A DNA stretch of 63,839 bases, counting the filler, from Pelomyxa schiedti (taxonomy: Eukaryota; Protista; Evosea): NCBI GenBank assembly GCA_020536535.1. It is 12 parts of 12 records of this genome, joined end to end, with 100 filler letters (N's around TTAATTAATTAA, not from the genome) between each part and the next. Parts side by side here need not be neighbours in the genome. Positions count along the whole stretch, not along the records: positions 11,686 to 16,000 come from JAHLWZ010001609.1; 11 more parts are not named here. The stretch is one strand, 5' to 3'. Of the stretch, positions 8,357 to 16,100 are shown in pieces (the stretch's first letter is position 1; each line of letters begins with the position of its first letter). The position numbers and the translations under genes are program-made. Below the pieces are notes generated by a model, which worked only from the letters and a program-made list of their open reading frames with translations, ran no database searches and was not told the DNA's origin.

Positions 8357-10742
8357 ATGCATCAAGACACGAGTGGAGATCGCGGAGATGCGTGCGTTGC
8401 GGTGATGATGGAGGAGTGGAAGGGATCTCGCGCGGCGCCGGTCGCTGATTCGGCGTCGTCCGTATCGGGCGAGGGCGACTTGGCGTCGGCCGCTCACGAC
8501 GCGTCGCTGGCGGAGGCCGACGACGGCGAGAAGGGGGGCGCGATGGGGGTGATCGCCGCGAAGGTTCGCGCGGCGTCTCCGGCCTTCGCGGGGATGCTGC
8601 CGAGGTCGCCGAGGCTCGGTGCGTCCTCTCCGGTGTACGGCGCCGCTGGGTTGGGGATTATGGGTGCATTGGAGCCCAGGGAGCTTTTTGCTACGCACAG
8701 AGCGGCTAGAGAGGCCAGAAAAGTGCGCGGCGCTGTTGATTATTATTTGCACTTGTGCCAGCAGTATTCAGGTATGGGAGAAAAAAAAATAATTGAAGTG
8801 GGGTTAGAGTTAGGGAAGTGAGCCGGTTCAATTCACCTTTTTTACTTACTTTCTCAGTGAAACCCGATGCGGCCATTATATCTGCCTTGAGGGTTGGAGG
8901 GAATACTTTGAAGCCATCTCGTAACTTTTCTGATGAAGATATGCTTCCCTTGGCGGAACTTTTGTTGTGGGACCCACCAAGTAATTATCTTCCCTCTCCC
9001 CCTTCTTCACTCTCACAATATTGTGTGGTAGAAGAGGAGGAAGACTCAGAGTCCACTGGGGATGTGGGAACTTTACCCTCTGCACAGTTCACTACTTTAC
9101 TGCTTGGTGGATGTCATTTGTGTATGGATATCAACGGGAACCACAATAACCTGACCATTTTGGCTAGATTGTGGTGGCGCAATCACTTTAGGCCGTATTC
9201 TGCGTGCAAACACATCCCTGGAATTCATCGATATTAGTAGAAATAATATCGCAGGCCTCGGTTGTGAGGTATGACTAGAAAGTGTTGTGGTTGGAACTAA
9301 AGAAACTTTAGCACATTGCAAATGCATTGGAACATAATAGTACAGTGACTCATCTGGATTTACATTCGAACAGCATTGGCCTTCAGGTTGAAATTTCTTT
9401 CCTCGTTATTTGGCTCATTACGCCAAAACAGGGAGCAAGAGCAATGGCACATGCAATACAAGGAACTCACCATTCTCTTCTCTTTCTTGATCTTAGCGCA
9501 AATCTTATTACATACAACGGAGTTGTTGTTCTACGGTCCGCTGTTGCGGGTTTTATCTCTTTCACAGCTTTTCCAAGTTCACTCCTTTGCAGGATGCAAC
9601 TACAAACGAGGCCACGTATCTGACGACCCTCCTTTGTAAGTTTACTTCAAGAACCCGCTTTTCAGTACTTATTCGTCAGACCTGGAGGATTTTTCCCCTG
9701 GAGGCCTGGTGTAGATATTTGCAAATGTTGTTCCCATAAGAAAGGCGCCGTATCAACCAAACACGTGGAACTTCAAGAGTTTGCTCATGCAGACGACAGA
9801 AAGTCCACAAAGCTTGAAGCCGACCTTAGCAGTAACTTGGTACGCAAGCCTCAAAACAAGTAGTGTCTCACGTATTTCTAGGTTCTTGAAGAGCTTTGGA
9901 ACTCTCTGACGCACGGTGCTGGCGCTGCTCTTGCAGTAATAGCAACAGCTTTCAACCTAGTTAGAGCAGCTTCACAAACCGTGCGGCACGTTGAGGGTGA
10001 GAAATTGCATTGCTTACTCAACCTTACAACTTCGTTTTAAGGAGCTCTCATATTTAGCCTTTGTTTGCTCATGGTATACTTTTCATCCATGTTTTACCAC
10101 AGCTTCTTCATGCTCAAGGCTCCAAAGGTTGCAAATAGTTCCGCTTCCCCTCTAACCGAGCTAGGCCGTTTTTCATCGCTTGGATCGATCAGCAATATAT
10201 CTGTTGATTGCCGGAACCTACACCCCTATCTGCATGATTTCACTATATGGACTTGTTGGGACACTTTTACTTGCCAGTATTTGGGCCATGGCATTCTTGG
10301 GAGTACTGCTTGATATTATTGCCTGGTCAAAGTGTATGACCTTAAAGTATGACCAATTATATGATGTCATTCCCTAAACACGAATTTAAGATATGGGTTG
10401 TACCTGGCAATGGGATGGGCACTGGTTCCTTGGATTTATTCAATAATGACATATCCCGGTCCTGTTCTTGGGTTCTGGGGCTACTTTTGGTTGGCATTTG
10501 GTGGCATTATTTACACCGTGTGTACCTTTTTCATAATTTACTCTTAACAAGGTTTATTTTCCCAGGCCGGAGTCTTCTTTTTAGTGAATGACGAAGTGGG
10601 GAAGTTCTACCATGTATTTTGGCATATTTGTTCACTTGTCGGCTCTATCATGCACTGGTAGGACCATTGACGTTTTATTTTCTTCTTAATGCTTTGTCAG
10701 GGTGTGTATATACTATTATGTTCTGCCGAATCCCCTTGCTGA
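8357..10742 (+). CDS. RNI-type leucine-rich-repeat region fused to a hemolysin-III/PAQR family multi-TM domain
   Basis: LRR segments FTTLLLGGCHL, VTHLDLHSNSIG and LLFLDLSANLI. PAQR motifs EELWNSLTHG, SSMFYHS, DRSAIYLLIAGTYTP and HVFWH. The frame stays continuous if the intron at about 9636-9679 is spliced. Confidence 0.75.
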
Positions 10743-11585
10743 TCCTCCAATGGACTACTTTTCTTGGAAGAACTACAACGCTACAGCCTCCAGCTTTTTG
10801 TCCTCTCTCTCTAGCTGATTTTTATCCACGCCCGCTAAATAACAAATTCCATCACCATTCCCTAATTAGTTTTAACCGTGCCCAGTAAAAAAGGCCACAC
10901 AACCAAAAACAACACAACAAAATAAATGTAGGGAGGTTTTGTGGGCACTGTCACACCACTGTGTCACAGCACTGCATCATACCTCCCCCACACCTCCCAA
11001 TGTGGCCCCCGTAGCACAGGCAGGTATACCCTTCTCAAGCTTTTCTGCAAGACCACAGTCCCGCGACTGTCCTCCCACACACCCAAGAGAGCGTGTGGGA
11101 GCTAGTGTTGCTGTTTTGTGTGCTACGCTTGATACTGCCTGTGTTTAGCCAAGCTATCGCAGGGGCAAGGAGGTGGTTGCTATTCGGGCCCTTTACGTTG
11201 GAGTGAACCTTGCTCTTGGGGTCAATCCCATCACTAGACCCAGAATCTCCACGGCGAAGGAAACCAGTTACCAACACAACAGGAGCCTAAAAATAGAATT
11301 ATGGGTAGAACCGAATCCAAGGAACCAAAGGCGTCGCACAACGCGGGGAGTCCCGCGTTCGTTTCGGCACCGGCGCTACTGGCACGCGAACAACTTGGAG
11401 CCATCGCCGCGGCCGCCGTCGTCGCGAAGCGCCGCTGTCAACCAGGCACAACAGCGACGACCAAAACAACAACAAAGAGAAAAACAACAGGGGAGAAAGC
11501 CAAACTCAAAAGGAGAAGAAACAGAGCTCTCCCCAAGAAGGGGAGCGAGACATTGAAGAGGGAAGGGCACTTGATTGGGAGGCTT

Positions 11586-11685
11586 NNNNNNNNNNNNNNN
11601 NNNNNNNNNNNNNNNNNNNNNNNNNNNNNTTAATTAATTAANNNNNNNNNNNNNNNNNNNNNNNNNNNNNNNNNNNNNNNNNNNN
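11586..11685. other. Artificial contig-joining spacer (N-run + TTAATTAATTAA + N-run). Others at 16001-16100, 25182-25281, 43208-43307, 48191-48290, 54459-54558, 56960-57059, 58394-58493, 59576-59675, 60922-61021 and 62327-62426
   Basis: The same six-frame-stop 12-mer sits inside each about 100-nt N-containing spacer, 11 times. Confidence 0.97.
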
Positions 11686-12181
11686 TGATATCCAGTTTGA
11701 ATTGCATGATGGTGGCACTGGTTTCCACATTGGTGGCTTCAGAATTCCAACCACAGACCCTGTTTTCTTCTCCCCTGATGAATCAAGTCCAGGTTTTTGG
11801 TGACAAATGAGGATTGTTCAGTGATTTGTGGACTGCTTCAGGCCAATGCTCAAACACAGCACTCCCATGAGAAAAACCCTAAAACAAAGTTTCACTGTTT
11901 GGCATGCAAGTGGAAAAAAGGAAAAACTAGACCCAGAAAAGTAAGAATTGTCACAAATCCATGTAATTTTTCCAAGTTAGTGTTCCTGTGTTGGAGATGA
12001 TCACGGGGGTAAAGGAACACTTTCTTTCAGCAAAGGAAAATTTTCTCATCTTTGTTGTCCAGAAAACAGAAGGTGGGGGTGTATTGCCTACTTTGCAGGC
12101 GTTTTCACAAGAACTGCACTCCTTCTTTGTAACTGCTGATGGCCTGAACTGTGTTGCTGTCGGGGGATTGTTTTTGCTGTA

Positions 12182-12393
12182 TGAGGGCCTGGCAGCAGCA
12201 TTGCACCTTGGGAGAGAAGGGAACCCAGTATTTGCAGAAGCTCATTGAATACATCCTCCACGATCCCACCACATCATATTTTGAGTTGGATACTGAGGTG
12301 GGCATGGAGGATGTATTCGCAGAGCTTCTGCAAATACAAGCAGTATGTGGGTTCCCTTCTCTCCCAAGGTGTAATGCTGCTGCCAGGCCCTCA
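12182..12393. repeat. Long imperfect fold-back A (stem segments of 46, 16, 14 and 6 bp)
   Basis: 12182-12227 is the reverse complement of 12348-12393 with 1 difference. 12228-12243 pairs with 12322-12337 and 12247-12260 with 12305-12318. Confidence 0.92.
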
Positions 12394-12867
12394 ATGTAAC
12401 CTTCCATGGAAGGCATCCCCAGCCTTCGAACACTGCATTCACAATCCCACAAAAGTGCCACCAGCCTTCCTCAAGGAGCAACTGTGGCAGTGTAGCTCCC
12501 AGCCCCAGTGAAAACAGGTACTGTGGAATCACCACCTCACCACGGCACATCATATTTTGAGTCTGATACTGAGGTGCCCTCACTGCCTGATGTGATGAAT
12601 TGTTGTTGTGGTGTGTCATTTGTATGCGTCATCTGCCCTTCGCTGCTTCTGGTATACAGGCGGGATCAGTCATTGCTCTGGGTTGATTTTCTTGAGGTGA
12701 GATGATTATGAATTGTTCTCCCTGTGTTACTCTCAACCAAAAATGCCAGGTTTTTCCCTTTGAAAGTGTGGGGTCAACCTCAGACTCCTATGTTCAGACC
12801 AACTGTGTTGTGGGATTTGAGGTGAAGAATTGCTGTAATCAAGAGAATGAATATGATGACCTTGGTG

Positions 12868-13217
12868 GCTAATGAGGCACGTTGTGTCGCGTTCCCCAGA
12901 CTTGGCAACGACGAGTGCTGCACCGTAGCGTCTCCCCCAGACCATAAACCGATCCCCGATAATGCTTGCTCCAGAACAGCACCTGTCGTCGACATTGTGC
13001 CCCAACACTGCCCAACTAACTTCCAGCCCTCACACACAGCTGGCCACCGTTGTTGCTGCCGCGGTTGGGGCTGGATCAAGACGGGCACGACGTCGACGGC
13101 AGGTGCCGCTCCGGAGCAAGCATTATTGGCGATCGGCTCATGATTGGGGGGAGATGCTACGGTGCGGCGCCCATCGTTGCCGAGTTCGGGGAACGCGACA
13201 CAGCGTGGCTCATTGGC
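12868..13217. repeat. Diverged inverted repeat B (135-nt arms, 80-nt spacer)
   Basis: 12868-13002 aligns without gaps to the reverse complement of 13083-13217, with about 24 substitutions by hand count, mostly transitions. Confidence 0.9.
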
Positions 13218-13743
13218 TCCAATCCCTCAACAAAAGCCAACCTGAGATTTCCAATCTCAGGTACCCGTTTGTCTTGTCTTGGGTGTTTTTTTTTTCCCCC
13301 TAACACCTTGTGCAGTAGCAAATTAATTCTATGTCTGAATACTGCTGAAACCATTCCAAGTGGTCATTGTGCTTATATTCCAACGGCTGCACATTAGGGT
13401 TCATGGACTCTGGGAGGATGCCACGACCCCTTTCTCCGCCGTTTTTCTTTCCCCTGGTCCACCTCCCTCCTTATGATTAAAGATAAAACAACAGCAAAAA
13501 TGTACTACAATACAAGTATAAGGTTCTATCCAGCCGTCACTGCCCCACCTCCGTCAAGCCTCAAGGTAGGTTCTTCAAAAACCACAATTTGTCCTCACTC
13601 ACCTGACCCAACAAACACGGTAAAAGGATGATATTATTGCAGCAAGTACATTGTGCACCCACTCCCTGTCAGTGCTGGAATATACTACATGGCCACTTCC
13701 CTGACTGGTCTGAGCGATGCCACTGTGAGAATACTGGACATTT

Positions 13744-13910
13744 AGCAGTGTTCATCAAAGTAAATGAAAACTACGACTCAAGAAAAAGTGTTAATATCCT
13801 CTTTTCTGCATTGGTCAAACTCTCTGACTGGACATTGTTTGACCAATGCAGAAAAGAGGATATTAACACTTTTTCTTGAGTAGTTTTCATTTACTTTGAT
13901 GAACACTGCT
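13744..13910. repeat. Near-perfect hairpin C (74-bp stem, one 3-nt bulge, 16-nt loop), candidate pre-miRNA or hairpin RNA
   Basis: 13744-13820 matches the reverse complement of 13837-13910 except for a 3-nt insertion. Confidence 0.93.
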
Positions 13911-14937
13911 GCACATCATTTGCACTTCTGTGTGAGAACAAGATTTTTAAAATCGAAATCGAGGGTGAGCATGAAACTCCTTTTCACTCAAAATAATAGG
14001 CTGGGAATCCACTTGAGAAGGCCTGTTGCATATTGAAGCAGGTGGCCCTTGGCCTAGCACAACTGCACAGCATAAACATTGCCCACAGGCACCGGCCACC
14101 TCCCTAACTGTTGTGCATCCACTCTAAATAGAAACATCCAACCAAGTAGTATACTTTTGATAGACCGATCTGAGACACCTTTCGTAAAGATAACGGTACT
14201 TCTTCATTTACAAAAGATTTGTTTCTGACTCAAAAACAAGAGTTTCAATTTCGCCAAGTCTGCGACATGTGGCACTCTCCTGCTTGAGGGAAGTTGTGGT
14301 GCTGCCAGGGTGCGCTGTAACAATGAACAGAACCTCTGACTATGTAATTGTGACACCCATCCGTTCACTGCCTGTTACCATGTGCTCTACTCTGGATGCA
14401 TCTTCACATACAGCGGCCGCAACCCCAACACCAACTCCAACAGCATCCCCTTCCACGCCCACACCCACTCCCACCCCACAACAACCGTTCCAGCACCAAC
14501 CCCGTTGCCGCTGGCATCCTCAGCAACAACAGCGGCTGCGACCAATGAGCCTGACAACGACGGGGAGGAGGAGGAAGAAAGAGAGGGAGAAGAGGGTGAT
14601 GAACCGTGCAGGTCCTGTAGAAAACACCTTGAGCTTCGTCCCTCCCTATTACTAGGATTTCAAGCAAAAAACCCTGGGGAAACGAAGGAACCATAATCAA
14701 TCCTCGATTTGGTGGACAAAACGGGAAAGTCAGCTTTCGCCTCTGTCGAGGGGTTGCGGTGATGATTGGTGCCGCGGTTCGCAGTGGCGCGGTGATGCGT
14801 TGTGGTGCACACAGCAGTTTTTGACTGCTGCATTTGTGTGAAAGTAATTGGCAAACACAAACATAAAGGAAGTAAACATGTTACTGATTATTGATGGTGG
14901 CTGGTGCGGCTGTTCTCACCAGTGTGGTGGATGTTGT

Positions 14938-15410
14938 GCTGAAAGCATTGTTGTTGGTGGGGGATAGTAAAGGAGAGTCTTCATTGTCAGCTGAATCACC
15001 AAAATCAAGCTCAGAGAGAGGTGGCAACATTGCACCTCGTTTTCTCACAATAGCATTGACATCACCATCACTCCAAGCATGAATCACAATGACACTAGCA
15101 TCCATGACTTACGAAGGGATGTCCACACCCTGAAATTAACAACAGCACAGTTGATGGCACTCTGCTCAAGTGTCCAGGAAAATGAAAGCCTTCCACAGAC
15201 TAGAAGTCATGAAGAACTCCAGGCAACATCAGGTTTGTCTATGTTCAGTTTTATGTCATCTCACTTCTCAACAGAGCAACCAACACAAAGGCCAACCAAA
15301 AGAGAAAACAAGGTGCAGTGTTGCCACCTCTCTCTGAGCTTGATTTTGGTGATTCAGCTGACAATGAAGACTCTCCTTTACTATCCCCCACCAACAACAA
15401 TGCTTTCAGC
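14938..15410. repeat. Inverted duplication D of a 109-nt coding-like segment (255-nt spacer)
   Basis: 14938-15046 matches the reverse complement of 15302-15410 with 2 differences. Both arms encode LPPLSELDFGDSADNEDSPLLSPTNNNAFS. Confidence 0.92.
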
Positions 15411-16100
15411 AGAAACGAGAAAAAATATTATTACTTACTTTTTCTTCGATTTGGTTTGTTCAATCAAAAGGGAAAACAGGACCGCCGGTTCGTTCGGTGG
15501 CTGGTCGAGGTGTACCAGGCCTCCAAGTTGGCTGATGCCCACCAGGTTGCCCCGAGGCATATCCCCAACAGCTCCCCAATGTTGGTGCTGTTGCTTTTGC
15601 TGTTCTGTTGCTGTTGCTCCTGCTGGTTGCTTCTGTGTTGTTCCTCCAGTCCTTTATGGCACTGAGCTGAGTTAGACAAGTTAATTGGACCCAAGGCCTT
15701 TTTCAATGCAAAGTATATGGGAATCCCAGCAAGAAATCATAACCTCCTCCACACCCTGTCACACAAACCAAAAATACCCACCCCCCATTCAGCCAAATAA
15801 AACCACAGGAAAAACAACCCAACAAATTCAGCCCAGCCTCCCACAACTTCATTTCTCTTGCCTTGCACCCCCAAAAAAACAAAAAGGAACCAAAGCACCA
15901 CATTTGACCCACAGCTAGTTGTTGCTCTCCACAGCAAAAAACAGATATAAGCTATACTACAAGTCCTAACTGAGTTGAGGGTGGCTCACCATCAGACTCA
16001 NNNNNNNNNNNNNNNNNNNNNNNNNNNNNNNNNNNNNNNNNNNNTTAATTAATTAANNNNNNNNNNNNNNNNNNNNNNNNNNNNNNNNNNNNNNNNNNNN

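Follow-up and report, generated by a model that had tools for sequence, protein, structure and literature searches.

The contig JAHLWZ010001609.1 of Pelomyxa schiedti, an anaerobic amoeba of the Archamoebae, raises the question of how four long inverted repeats came to lie within 4315 bp and whether they serve as a source of hairpin RNA. The entire contig was analysed; it occupies positions 11,686 to 16,000 of the window, a stretch of 63,839 nt along which positions are counted unless they are assigned to the second copy of the locus. With a probability of roughly 60%, the locus may be considered a local hotspot of inverted duplication, situated in an unstable and essentially non-coding nuclear spacer downstream of an orphan gene.

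The original observation of four unrelated inverted repeats, termed A to D, was confirmed by a repeat search, by folding and by self-BLAST, in which the four were mutually dissimilar. Hairpin A (12182-12393) has arms at 12182-12260 and 12305-12393, a 44-nt loop and a 10-nt bulge; its arms consist of an outer block of 46 nt matching at 98% and an inner block of 33 nt matching at 91%. The loop contains a 31-nt motif (12270-12300), a second copy of which is found on the + strand at 12546-12576 (94%, E = 7.6e-6). Hairpin B has arms of approximately 135-140 nt (12868-13002 and 13083-13217, extendable to 12862-13222) with 82% complementarity, a loop of 80 nt and a GC content of 61%. Hairpin C (13744-13910) is near perfect, with arms of approximately 77-81 nt at 13744-13820 and 13837-13910, a single 3-nt bulge and a 16-nt loop, of which 10 nt (13827-13836) directly copy the left flank at 13733-13742 (p about 0.001). 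Hairpin D (14934-15414) has arms of 113 nt at 14934-15046 and 15302-15414 that match at 97% on either side of a 255-nt spacer. A fifth, small hairpin (13230-13272) with a 9-bp perfect stem and a 3-nt loop is located just 3' of B; its sequence is unchanged in the second copy of the locus, and the hairpin overlaps an annotated 5' splice site, CAG|GTACCC.

When folded as RNA, A, B, C and D gave z scores of -18.5, -19.2, -19.8 and -22.7, respectively, beyond every shuffle, none of which folded equally well. The contig contains five inverted alignments of at least 30 nt, the longest being 359 nt, compared to a mean of 0.23 such alignments and a longest of 49 nt among 200 dinucleotide shuffles. Four hairpins in 4.3 kb also exceed the background, since no inverted repeat of at least 30 nt was found in approximately 22 kb of gene-dense P. 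schiedti DNA, made up of 18.8 kb of flanking scaffold and a 3.1-kb contig. The homologous 3.3-kb stretch of the second copy contains two. From G:U content and the folding energies of both strands, neither strand of the hairpins is favored, and the G:U pairs of B considered separately also present no strand preference. The mismatches between the arms of B are largely transitions (22 of 24) with a GC-to-AT bias, and 12 of 21 are in a CpG context.

MDA chimeras are typically inverted joins to nearby sequence, and Lasken and Stockwell reportedly described inverted chimeras from phi29 MDA in 2007. The P. schiedti assembly was obtained from single cells by GenomiPhi (phi29) amplification and SPAdes in single-cell mode, with one separately amplified cell per DNA library and Smart-seq2 for the RNA (PMC8887013). 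Logan contigs from three DNA runs (X1, X2 and X3) and one single-cell RNA run (X4) were aligned to the contig; the independence of X1-X3 is inferred from the published protocol and from their differing content of the two locus copies. Contigs of X1 (9551 bp), X2 (8981 bp) and X3 (1100 bp) run across A and B, and in all three runs the contigs are interrupted at the k-mer boundaries of C and D, at 13881 in the case of C. The contig depth of the D arm is 54.8, about equal to the summed depths of its two flanks. While the inverted repeats here resemble phi29 chimeras in joining sequence a few hundred bases away, and while the short length of the contig and the lack of A, C and D on the main scaffold would also fit an artefact, a simple chimera would have arms running to the contig end; instead, each repeat is bounded by unique flanks on both sides. 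In addition, the arms differ by substitutions and indels, including one of 10 nt and one of 3 nt, and do not form the exact inverted join of one amplification reaction. The junctions and breaks are identical across separately amplified cells. Both diverged arms of B are also present in the Smart-seq2 RNA contigs of a different cell, and B is found on the main scaffold. Thus, the original view that these are not fresh amplification chimeras holds, and a phi29 or single-cell assembly artefact is the least probable of the explanations considered.

The first feature of the contig is the 3' end of an orphan protein-coding gene on the + strand (11687-11803, 38 codons and a stop), identified by direct reading of a stop-free frame. 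Its peptide matches P0003 of the main scaffold with 97% identity over 36 residues (phmmer, E = 1.6e-15) and, judged by sequence, is the counterpart of P0003; thus, the hairpin region is situated downstream of this orphan gene. An RNA contig of X4 extends to 11686-11720. That the region would contain no recognisable conserved gene was also borne out. A Pfam search of ten stop-free stretches of the contig, P0003 and P0004 gave no match, and protein searches identified no homologs of the three annotated orphan models on the contig. One of the open reading frames corresponds to the annotated NCBI protein Pelo_18051. Searches with the open reading frame through the D arm, with the last exon of Pelo_18050 and with the open reading frame over both B arms returned the annotated proteins of the contig itself or nothing. 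An exact-product look-up of four open reading frames, a tRNA search of the contig and two scans of JGI metagenome contigs (for a dispersed repeat and for the loop motif) produced no match. With Rfam at a relaxed threshold, the best match was 33 bits against a gathering threshold of 100, and sub-threshold matches fell on the C stem. The annotated models Pelo_18050 and Pelo_18051, together with the one on hairpin A, depend in part on palindromic open reading frames and are probably not genes.

These gene models bear on whether the hairpins are part of introns, either introner-like or mirtron-like, that are spliced out of + strand genes. P. schiedti averages 7.4 introns per gene, according to the annotation C is within the second intron of Pelo_18050 and the right D arm within the intron of Pelo_18051, and GT and AG dinucleotides can be read near several hairpin edges. 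The models are orphans built on palindromic open reading frames, however, and the RNA contig at 13083-13510 continues unspliced through annotated intron 1. No splice joints were present in X4, at a depth too low to exclude rare splicing. The introner elements of Amoebophrya are similar in that hairpin-forming inverted repeats occur in non-coding parts of protist genes without a transposase; they occur in repeated families with inverted repeats of 8-20 nt at the intron ends and direct repeats of 3-5 nt, and their removal has been validated by RNA-seq (PMC7789003). None of these traits was found here. Arm length, family structure and splicing led to the rejection of Amoebophrya-type introners, and with intron 1 retained and no family of elements identified, an intronic origin is very unlikely.

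The second copy of the locus, L003, provides a built-in comparison. It is located at about 74-77 kb on a 112-kb scaffold, JAHLWZ010000821.1, is 84-97% identical to the contig, and is described below in its own coordinates. B is present in both L003 and the contig, whereas A, C and the left D arm are missing from L003. At 11511-11588, L003 has one unduplicated copy of the sequence that forms the arms of A; this copy corresponds to the right arm read in reverse complement, including a 10-nt block that only the right arm has kept. The copy of the 31-nt motif at 12546-12576 is an insertion relative to L003, which has none at the matching position. For D, the right arm alone is present in L003 and is native, as is the 255-nt spacer, and the left arm is an inverted copy of 15302-15414. 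The left arm groups with the right arm of the contig against the right arm of L003 at four sites to one, a pattern that, at the level of sequence, favors copying after the split of the two locus copies. The native D arm contains frameshifting indels between the contig and L003.

The largest difference between the copies is a segment of 1303 nt (13744-15046), in place of which L003 has 41 nt. It extends exactly from the outer edge of C to the point where the left D arm ends on its inner side. The alignment of the two copies ends at 13743 and restarts at 15043, with breakpoints at 13743/13744 and 15046/15047. From the two copies, compared without an outgroup, we infer an insertion in the contig rather than a deletion in L003, although the segment may have been deleted from L003. 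The 41 nt of L003 were compared with the start of the left arm of C; the similarity was weak (p 0.07) and was not used.

Since L003 contains neither A nor C nor the left D arm, and since the arms copy native neighbours, the comparison shows A, C and D as copy-specific and apparently recent inverted duplications of neighbouring non-coding DNA. It likewise shows B as an old inverted repeat that was in place before the two copies split. The L003 homolog of B is found at 12408-12618, and a 3-nt deletion and an inner extension occur identically in its two arms. The divergence of the arms suggests that the outer left arm of B was lost from L003. L003 also has a private hairpin (11653-11793, z = -14.4) that is absent from the contig. 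Its loop contains the motif CATCATATTTTGAGT, in a relative position equivalent to that within the A loop.

A model of local inverted duplication may be drawn from these observations. A stretch of native DNA would be copied in reverse complement beside itself, likely by replication template switching or fold-back repair, an enzymatic mechanism that remains putative. Short templated direct copies would sometimes accompany the duplication. The same process may occasionally lengthen or homogenise existing arms, which point mutation would then decay. For A and D, the new arm is the reverse complement of adjacent sequence that is single-copy in L003. The breakpoints at the edges of C and D are consistent with this model, as are footprints of templated copying at the joints: the 10 nt of flank copied into the C loop and the copy of the 31-nt motif shared with the loop of A. 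Transcripts of the + strand through the hairpins would adopt long double-stranded hairpin folds that could, as a by-product, be drawn into RNA interference, with transcription indicated for B only. Selection for hairpins, and not mutation alone, could account for the recurrent birth of hairpins at a shared motif and for the 3-nt change made symmetrically in the L003 copy of B.

Template switching is described as creating and expanding inverted repeats in work of the Loytynoja group (10.1101/2023.04.19.537475 / PMC10710096) that extends to the expansion of inverted repeats in yeast promoters (PMC13100816). The events resemble the ones here in that a reverse-complement arm is made in one event, imperfect arms are homogenised or lengthened, and the changes are lineage-specific and seen between close relatives, as for A, D and B of L003. 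Unlike those events, several of the ones here are clustered in 3 kb, have used one motif repeatedly across the two copies and, in one case, are tied to a 1.3-kb segment. Typical template-switch events involve tens of nucleotides; the arms here, at 80-135 nt, are much longer.

The comparison with L003 also bears on whether four different fold-back transposons or palindromic MITEs were inserted from elsewhere. Like MITEs, the elements consist of arms and a short loop without coding capacity, their presence varies between the two locus copies, and the GC content of B is unlike that of its surroundings. The arms of A and D, however, copy adjacent native sequence that is unduplicated in L003, and the contig depth of the D arm corresponds to two copies only. 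A further copy of any arm was not found in L003 or L004, which provide 25 kb of additional P. schiedti DNA. No target-site duplications were found around whole elements: a comparison of left and right flanks was not significant for A, B and D, and for C a marginal 8-nt match (p 0.044) lies away from the element and the 10-nt repeat flanks one arm only. The four do not share termini and, as originally noted, are not one MITE family. An origin by transposition is therefore improbable.

A stronger alternative is that the locus is a functional hairpin-RNA cluster, either endo-siRNA or miRNA-like, in which + strand transcripts are produced, their stems cut and the products loaded into Argonaute for target silencing. 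The fast turnover of hairpins would then represent evolution of the arms-race type. In its favor are two single-cell RNA contigs, at 12849-13047 and 13083-13510, that are 100% identical to the DNA and cover both arms of B within 12849-13510, with a 35-nt gap between them and a depth of 2-4. CATGGGGA precedes the first of these contigs and presumably derives from the 3' end of the Smart-seq2 template-switch oligo, which it resembles. Because of this resemblance, a + strand RNA 5' end near 12849, approximately 13 nt before B, is suggested and is probably capped. Thus, B is probably transcribed on the + strand, and a hairpin RNA is plausible. Among the hairpins, coverage is confined to B and its downstream flank in this one run, with none on A, C or D, and the reads could include DNA.

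The locus shares several features with hpRNA and endo-siRNA loci, examples of which are the Drosophila hpRNAs, the Arabidopsis IR71-type loci, the long-hairpin miRNAs of Chlamydomonas and the miRNAs of Dictyostelium. These features are near-perfect stems of approximately 80-135 bp, with stems of roughly 100 bp or more possible from the long inverted repeats, fast birth by inverted duplication, several hairpins per locus, repeated hairpin origin and, for B, probable Pol II transcription. Both locus copies have also kept B as a hairpin, its L003 arms having changed symmetrically by 3 nt. The arms differ from those of hpRNA loci in their source, which is the adjacent non-coding DNA and not target genes. 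They had no match in the 25 kb of L003 and L004, and the open reading frames through the D arm and both B arms have no protein homologs; the frameshifts in the native D arm point in the same direction. The right arms of B in the contig and L003 are 92% identical and the flanks 95-97%, so that the arms diverge faster than their surroundings, which is unlike a sequence-constrained small-RNA gene. The absence of a preferred folding strand also argues against this reading.

Argonaute-based RNAi is described for the related Entamoeba, in which the known small RNAs are 27 nt in length with a 5'-polyphosphate and antisense to genes (PMC2582682). Literature linking Pelomyxa or Mastigamoeba to Dicer or Argonaute was not found. 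The Entamoeba small RNAs are not known to depend on Dicer, and a canonical Dicer is not known from Entamoeba. Since A, C and D are copy-specific and the arms of B evolve faster than their flanks, the original suggestion of an undescribed hairpin-RNA cluster stands as a tentative possibility and not as the best-supported reading, which is local inverted duplication.

The two processes may also be combined. The locus could be a nursery of hairpin-RNA genes, in which the CATCATATTTTGAGT motif nucleates palindromes, each copy of the locus acquires a different hairpin, and transcripts, of B at least, feed RNAi in a free-living archamoeba. This proposal is more speculative than a functional cluster and is considered unlikely. 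If true, hairpin-derived small RNAs would exist where only the RdRP-type 27-nt kind is known, and the birth, homogenisation and decay of hairpin genes would have been caught between two copies.

As a probable product of local inverted duplication, the locus serves, with its built-in comparison, as a case of long hairpin-forming sequence arising from ordinary DNA. It also shows that a long palindrome in a single-cell genome amplified with phi29 need not be an artefact. Reverse copying, arm extension or homogenisation, and decay have been proposed to supply the raw material from which new genes for hairpin RNAs and microRNAs arise; such events are rarely caught with arms this long or several side by side. 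Small RNAs from this locus, if found, would provide the first hint of hairpin-derived RNAi in the Archamoebae.

Repeat searching and self-BLAST of the 4315-bp contig JAHLWZ010001609.1 (Pelomyxa schiedti assembly GCA_020536535.1; window 11686–16000) recovered four unrelated inverted repeats (IRs) where the original prediction had placed them. IR A has arms at 12182–12260 and 12305–12393, with a 10-nt bulge and a 44-nt loop. The 135-nt arms of IR B (12868–13002 and 13083–13217) match at 82%, with pairing extendable to 12862–13222. IR C (13744–13820 and 13837–13910) has a 3-nt bulge and a 16-nt loop, and IR D (14934–15046 and 15302–15414) has 113-nt arms at 97% and a 255-nt spacer. RNA folding z-scores of −18.5 (A), −19.2 (B), −19.8 (C) and −22.7 (D) bear out the hairpins, and the longest inverted alignment in the contig exceeded that of 200 dinucleotide shuffles (359 vs 49 nt). 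Other than A–D, self-BLAST of the contig identified a small palindrome (13230–13272), one pair of 31-nt direct repeats (12270–12300 and 12546–12576), and no further repeats.

The original prediction noted no recognisable conserved gene among the IRs. Searches of the contig against Pfam and for tRNAs gave no match, Rfam gave none above threshold, and protein searches found no homologs anywhere for the three annotated models. The first model (12181–12560) is hairpin A read as coding sequence; as reconstructed from the annotation and sequence, its 111 residues fit if a 44-nt GT..AG stretch inside the right arm (12347–12390) is read as an intron. The hypothetical protein Pelo_18050 (13140–14655) starts within B's right arm, and its second intron contains hairpin C. 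In Pelo_18051 (14881–15852) the left arm of D serves as an exon, and a 75-codon frame on that arm is 100% identical to this NCBI protein. The native arm of D contains frameshifting 1-nt indels between two genome copies and is thus not coding. Spurious ORFs on palindromic DNA are the most likely explanation of the three models. All three have coding sequence that takes in hairpin arms and look like artefacts of palindrome-mirrored ORFs. The left edge of the contig (11687–11803) carries the 3' end of a real, though orphan, gene, whose 38 codons are 97% identical to the protein P0003. This gene, which lies upstream of the hairpins, is one of a Pelomyxa-restricted family, with members of 439 and 751 residues sharing a C-terminal stretch. 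The family, which includes P0003 and P0004 (84–2455 on a 3.1-kb contig, L004), has no Pfam domain, and no more than two representative clusters out of 1.8 billion matched.

The gene for P0003 lies on the 112-kb scaffold JAHLWZ010000821.1, of which a 22-kb portion (L003; P0003 at 10001–12078) contains a second copy of the whole contig at 11107–14253 with 84–97% identity. This copy is either a very divergent allele or a recent paralog arising from segmental duplication, and there are probably other such haplotigs in the assembly. The hairpins are the precise sites of difference between the two copies. Four lie in the 4.3 kb of the window contig and two in the 3.3-kb homologous stretch. The 11.0-kb and 7.8-kb scaffold flanks of that stretch and the 3.1-kb contig, a small and gene-dense control, contained no inverted alignments of at least 30 nt within 1.5 kb; relative to this neighbourhood, the locus is therefore a local hotspot.

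The arm sequence of A occurs singly in L003 (11511–11588), in left-arm orientation, and includes the 10-nt block that survives in the window only in the right arm. The right arm would therefore be an inverted copy of its upstream neighbour, with a later 10-nt loss from the left arm. L003 lacks the outermost 23 nt of each arm, suggesting that the arms were extended outwards once more. Alignment of the two copies ends at 13743 and restarts at 15043, such that 1303 nt of the window (13744–15046) correspond to 41 nt in L003. On the left, this difference breaks at the outer edge of C; on the right, it breaks at the inner edge of D's left arm. Of the two D arms, L003 has the right one only. The left arm of D has four differences in common with the window right arm relative to the L003 right arm, with two private changes in the left arm and one in the right. 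This pattern suggests that the left arm was copied from the right after the split of the copies. In the loop of C, 10 nt of the left flank recur in direct orientation immediately 5' of the right arm (p about 0.001).

One hairpin is private to L003 (11653–11793; 65-nt arms at 88%, z = −14.4), and nothing in the window corresponds to its arms. The motif CATCATATTTTGAGT is found in its loop, as in the loop of A, and in both cases the motif lies between the single-copy arm sequence and a 'ccagccttcgaac' unit, so each copy has formed a different palindrome about one motif. Part of this motif, TGAGTCTGATACTGAGGTGCCCTCA, is 80% complementary to a segment at the extreme end of the contig (12558–12582 and 15976–16000), and that segment is native in the window contig and in L003 alike. 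The motif itself may be a short dispersed or templated element. In the window (12419–12543) a unit ending '...gtaactcccagccccagtgaaaacag|gtactgcggaatcg' occurs once, against two to three tandem units in L003 (11620–12082), where the private hairpin sits at a unit junction. Just 3' of hairpin A is a perfect 14-nt palindrome, CCTTCCATGGAAGG (12402–12415), and the matching segment is inverted in L003 (window 12392–12418 vs L003 11943–11917). Just 3' of hairpin B, a (GTCTT)n microsatellite followed by a T10–12 run has ~2 units in the window (13270–13290) and ~13 in L003 (12745–12815). A C/A-rich dispersed repeat of ~165 nt (window 15696–15859) is found at 96% identity twice on the scaffold (L003 19170–19334 and about 13950–14115), ~5 kb apart in opposite orientation. 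Its read depth is raised ~2–3 fold in all DNA runs, and a 16.4-kb contig of the Logan run assemblies also terminates in it.

Both copies contain hairpin B. The L003 version lacks the outer 72 nt of the left arm, yet its inner stem is 95% complementary and its arms have a 3-nt deletion and an inner extension in common; these two arms have been homogenised. At one site, left arm still groups with left and right with right across the copies, so B is older than their split. The window arms differ at 24 of 135 positions; 22 of these differences are transitions, biased from GC to AT, and 12 of 21 inferred C-to-T changes are in CpG context. A pattern of this kind hints that cytosine methylation, or some other CpG-directed process of mutation, is at work in this amoeba. 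Hairpin B (12868–13217) is CpG-rich with 61% GC, compared to roughly 41–52% in its surroundings.

The best-supported account of the locus is repeated local inverted duplication, given the copy-specific presence of IRs, the breakpoints at their edges, the arms derived from native neighbours, the short templated direct copies and the symmetrical changes in both arms. Adjacent DNA in the spacer would repeatedly be copied as its reverse complement, existing arms would be lengthened or made alike, and arms would then decay through ordinary transition-biased mutation. The enzymology may be replication template switching, and the same picture would result from fold-back repair of breaks. The features of template switching described in two sources (10.1101/2023.04.19.537475; PMC13100816) are those of this locus.

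That the IRs form a functional hairpin-RNA cluster, as first proposed, is less likely, and what favors it concerns B, which both copies retain in hairpin form and for which transcription is probable. Contigs from X4, a Smart-seq2 run of another cell, are identical to the window copy at 11686–11720, 12517–12667, 12849–13047 and 13083–13510. The contig from 12849 is preceded by CATGGGGA, which resembles the 3' end of the template-switch oligo (...ACATGGG) and suggests a + strand RNA 5' end 13 nt ahead of B. Depth is 2–4, with zero coverage on A, C and D and a possible contribution of genomic DNA to the library. G:U pairing in B prefers neither strand. Against a cluster, the arms are copies of non-coding neighbours, and those of B diverge faster between copies (right 92%, left about 85% identical) than the flanks (95–97%). 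No targets were found in 25 kb of other P. schiedti DNA or in protein searches with D-arm and B-arm ORFs. The 27-nt small RNAs of Entamoeba are not known to require Dicer. This only studied relative is noted for antisense small RNAs of 27 nt with 5'-polyphosphate ends (PMC2582682), which also argues against the proposal.

Inverted chimeras are a known product of phi29 amplification. Since the assembly derives from seven cells picked by micromanipulation, which were amplified separately with a phi29 kit to give one library per cell, and transcriptomes were made by Smart-seq2 on single cells (PMC8887013), concern over amplification chimeras was justified. An artefact is nonetheless highly improbable, in keeping with the original prediction. 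Every IR has unique flanks on either side, where a simple chimera would go on retracing its own sequence, and arms differ by substitutions and by indels of 10 nt (A) and 3 nt (C). Contigs of 9551, 8981 and 1100 bp from three DNA runs cross A and B, and in 3/3 DNA runs the exact IRs C and D interrupt the contigs at their k-mer edges. The L003 version is present in runs X2 and X3; X1 has only the window copy and X3 has both, fitting separate amplifications. Both diverged arms of B also occur at 100% identity in the RNA run. Readings of the IRs as transposons or introns do not pass the tests that define them: A–D are mutually unrelated in self-BLAST and, as anticipated, not one MITE family, no target-site duplication flanks a whole element, and the RNA contig at 13083–13510 is, at this depth of 2–4, unspliced with annotated intron 1 retained.

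Long IRs, an origin by template switching and a possible role as hairpin-RNA precursors are already known kinds. What is new with repeated local inverted duplication in P. schiedti is the organism, the arm length (80–135 nt), the way the IRs cluster, and their repeated formation at a single motif in both copies.
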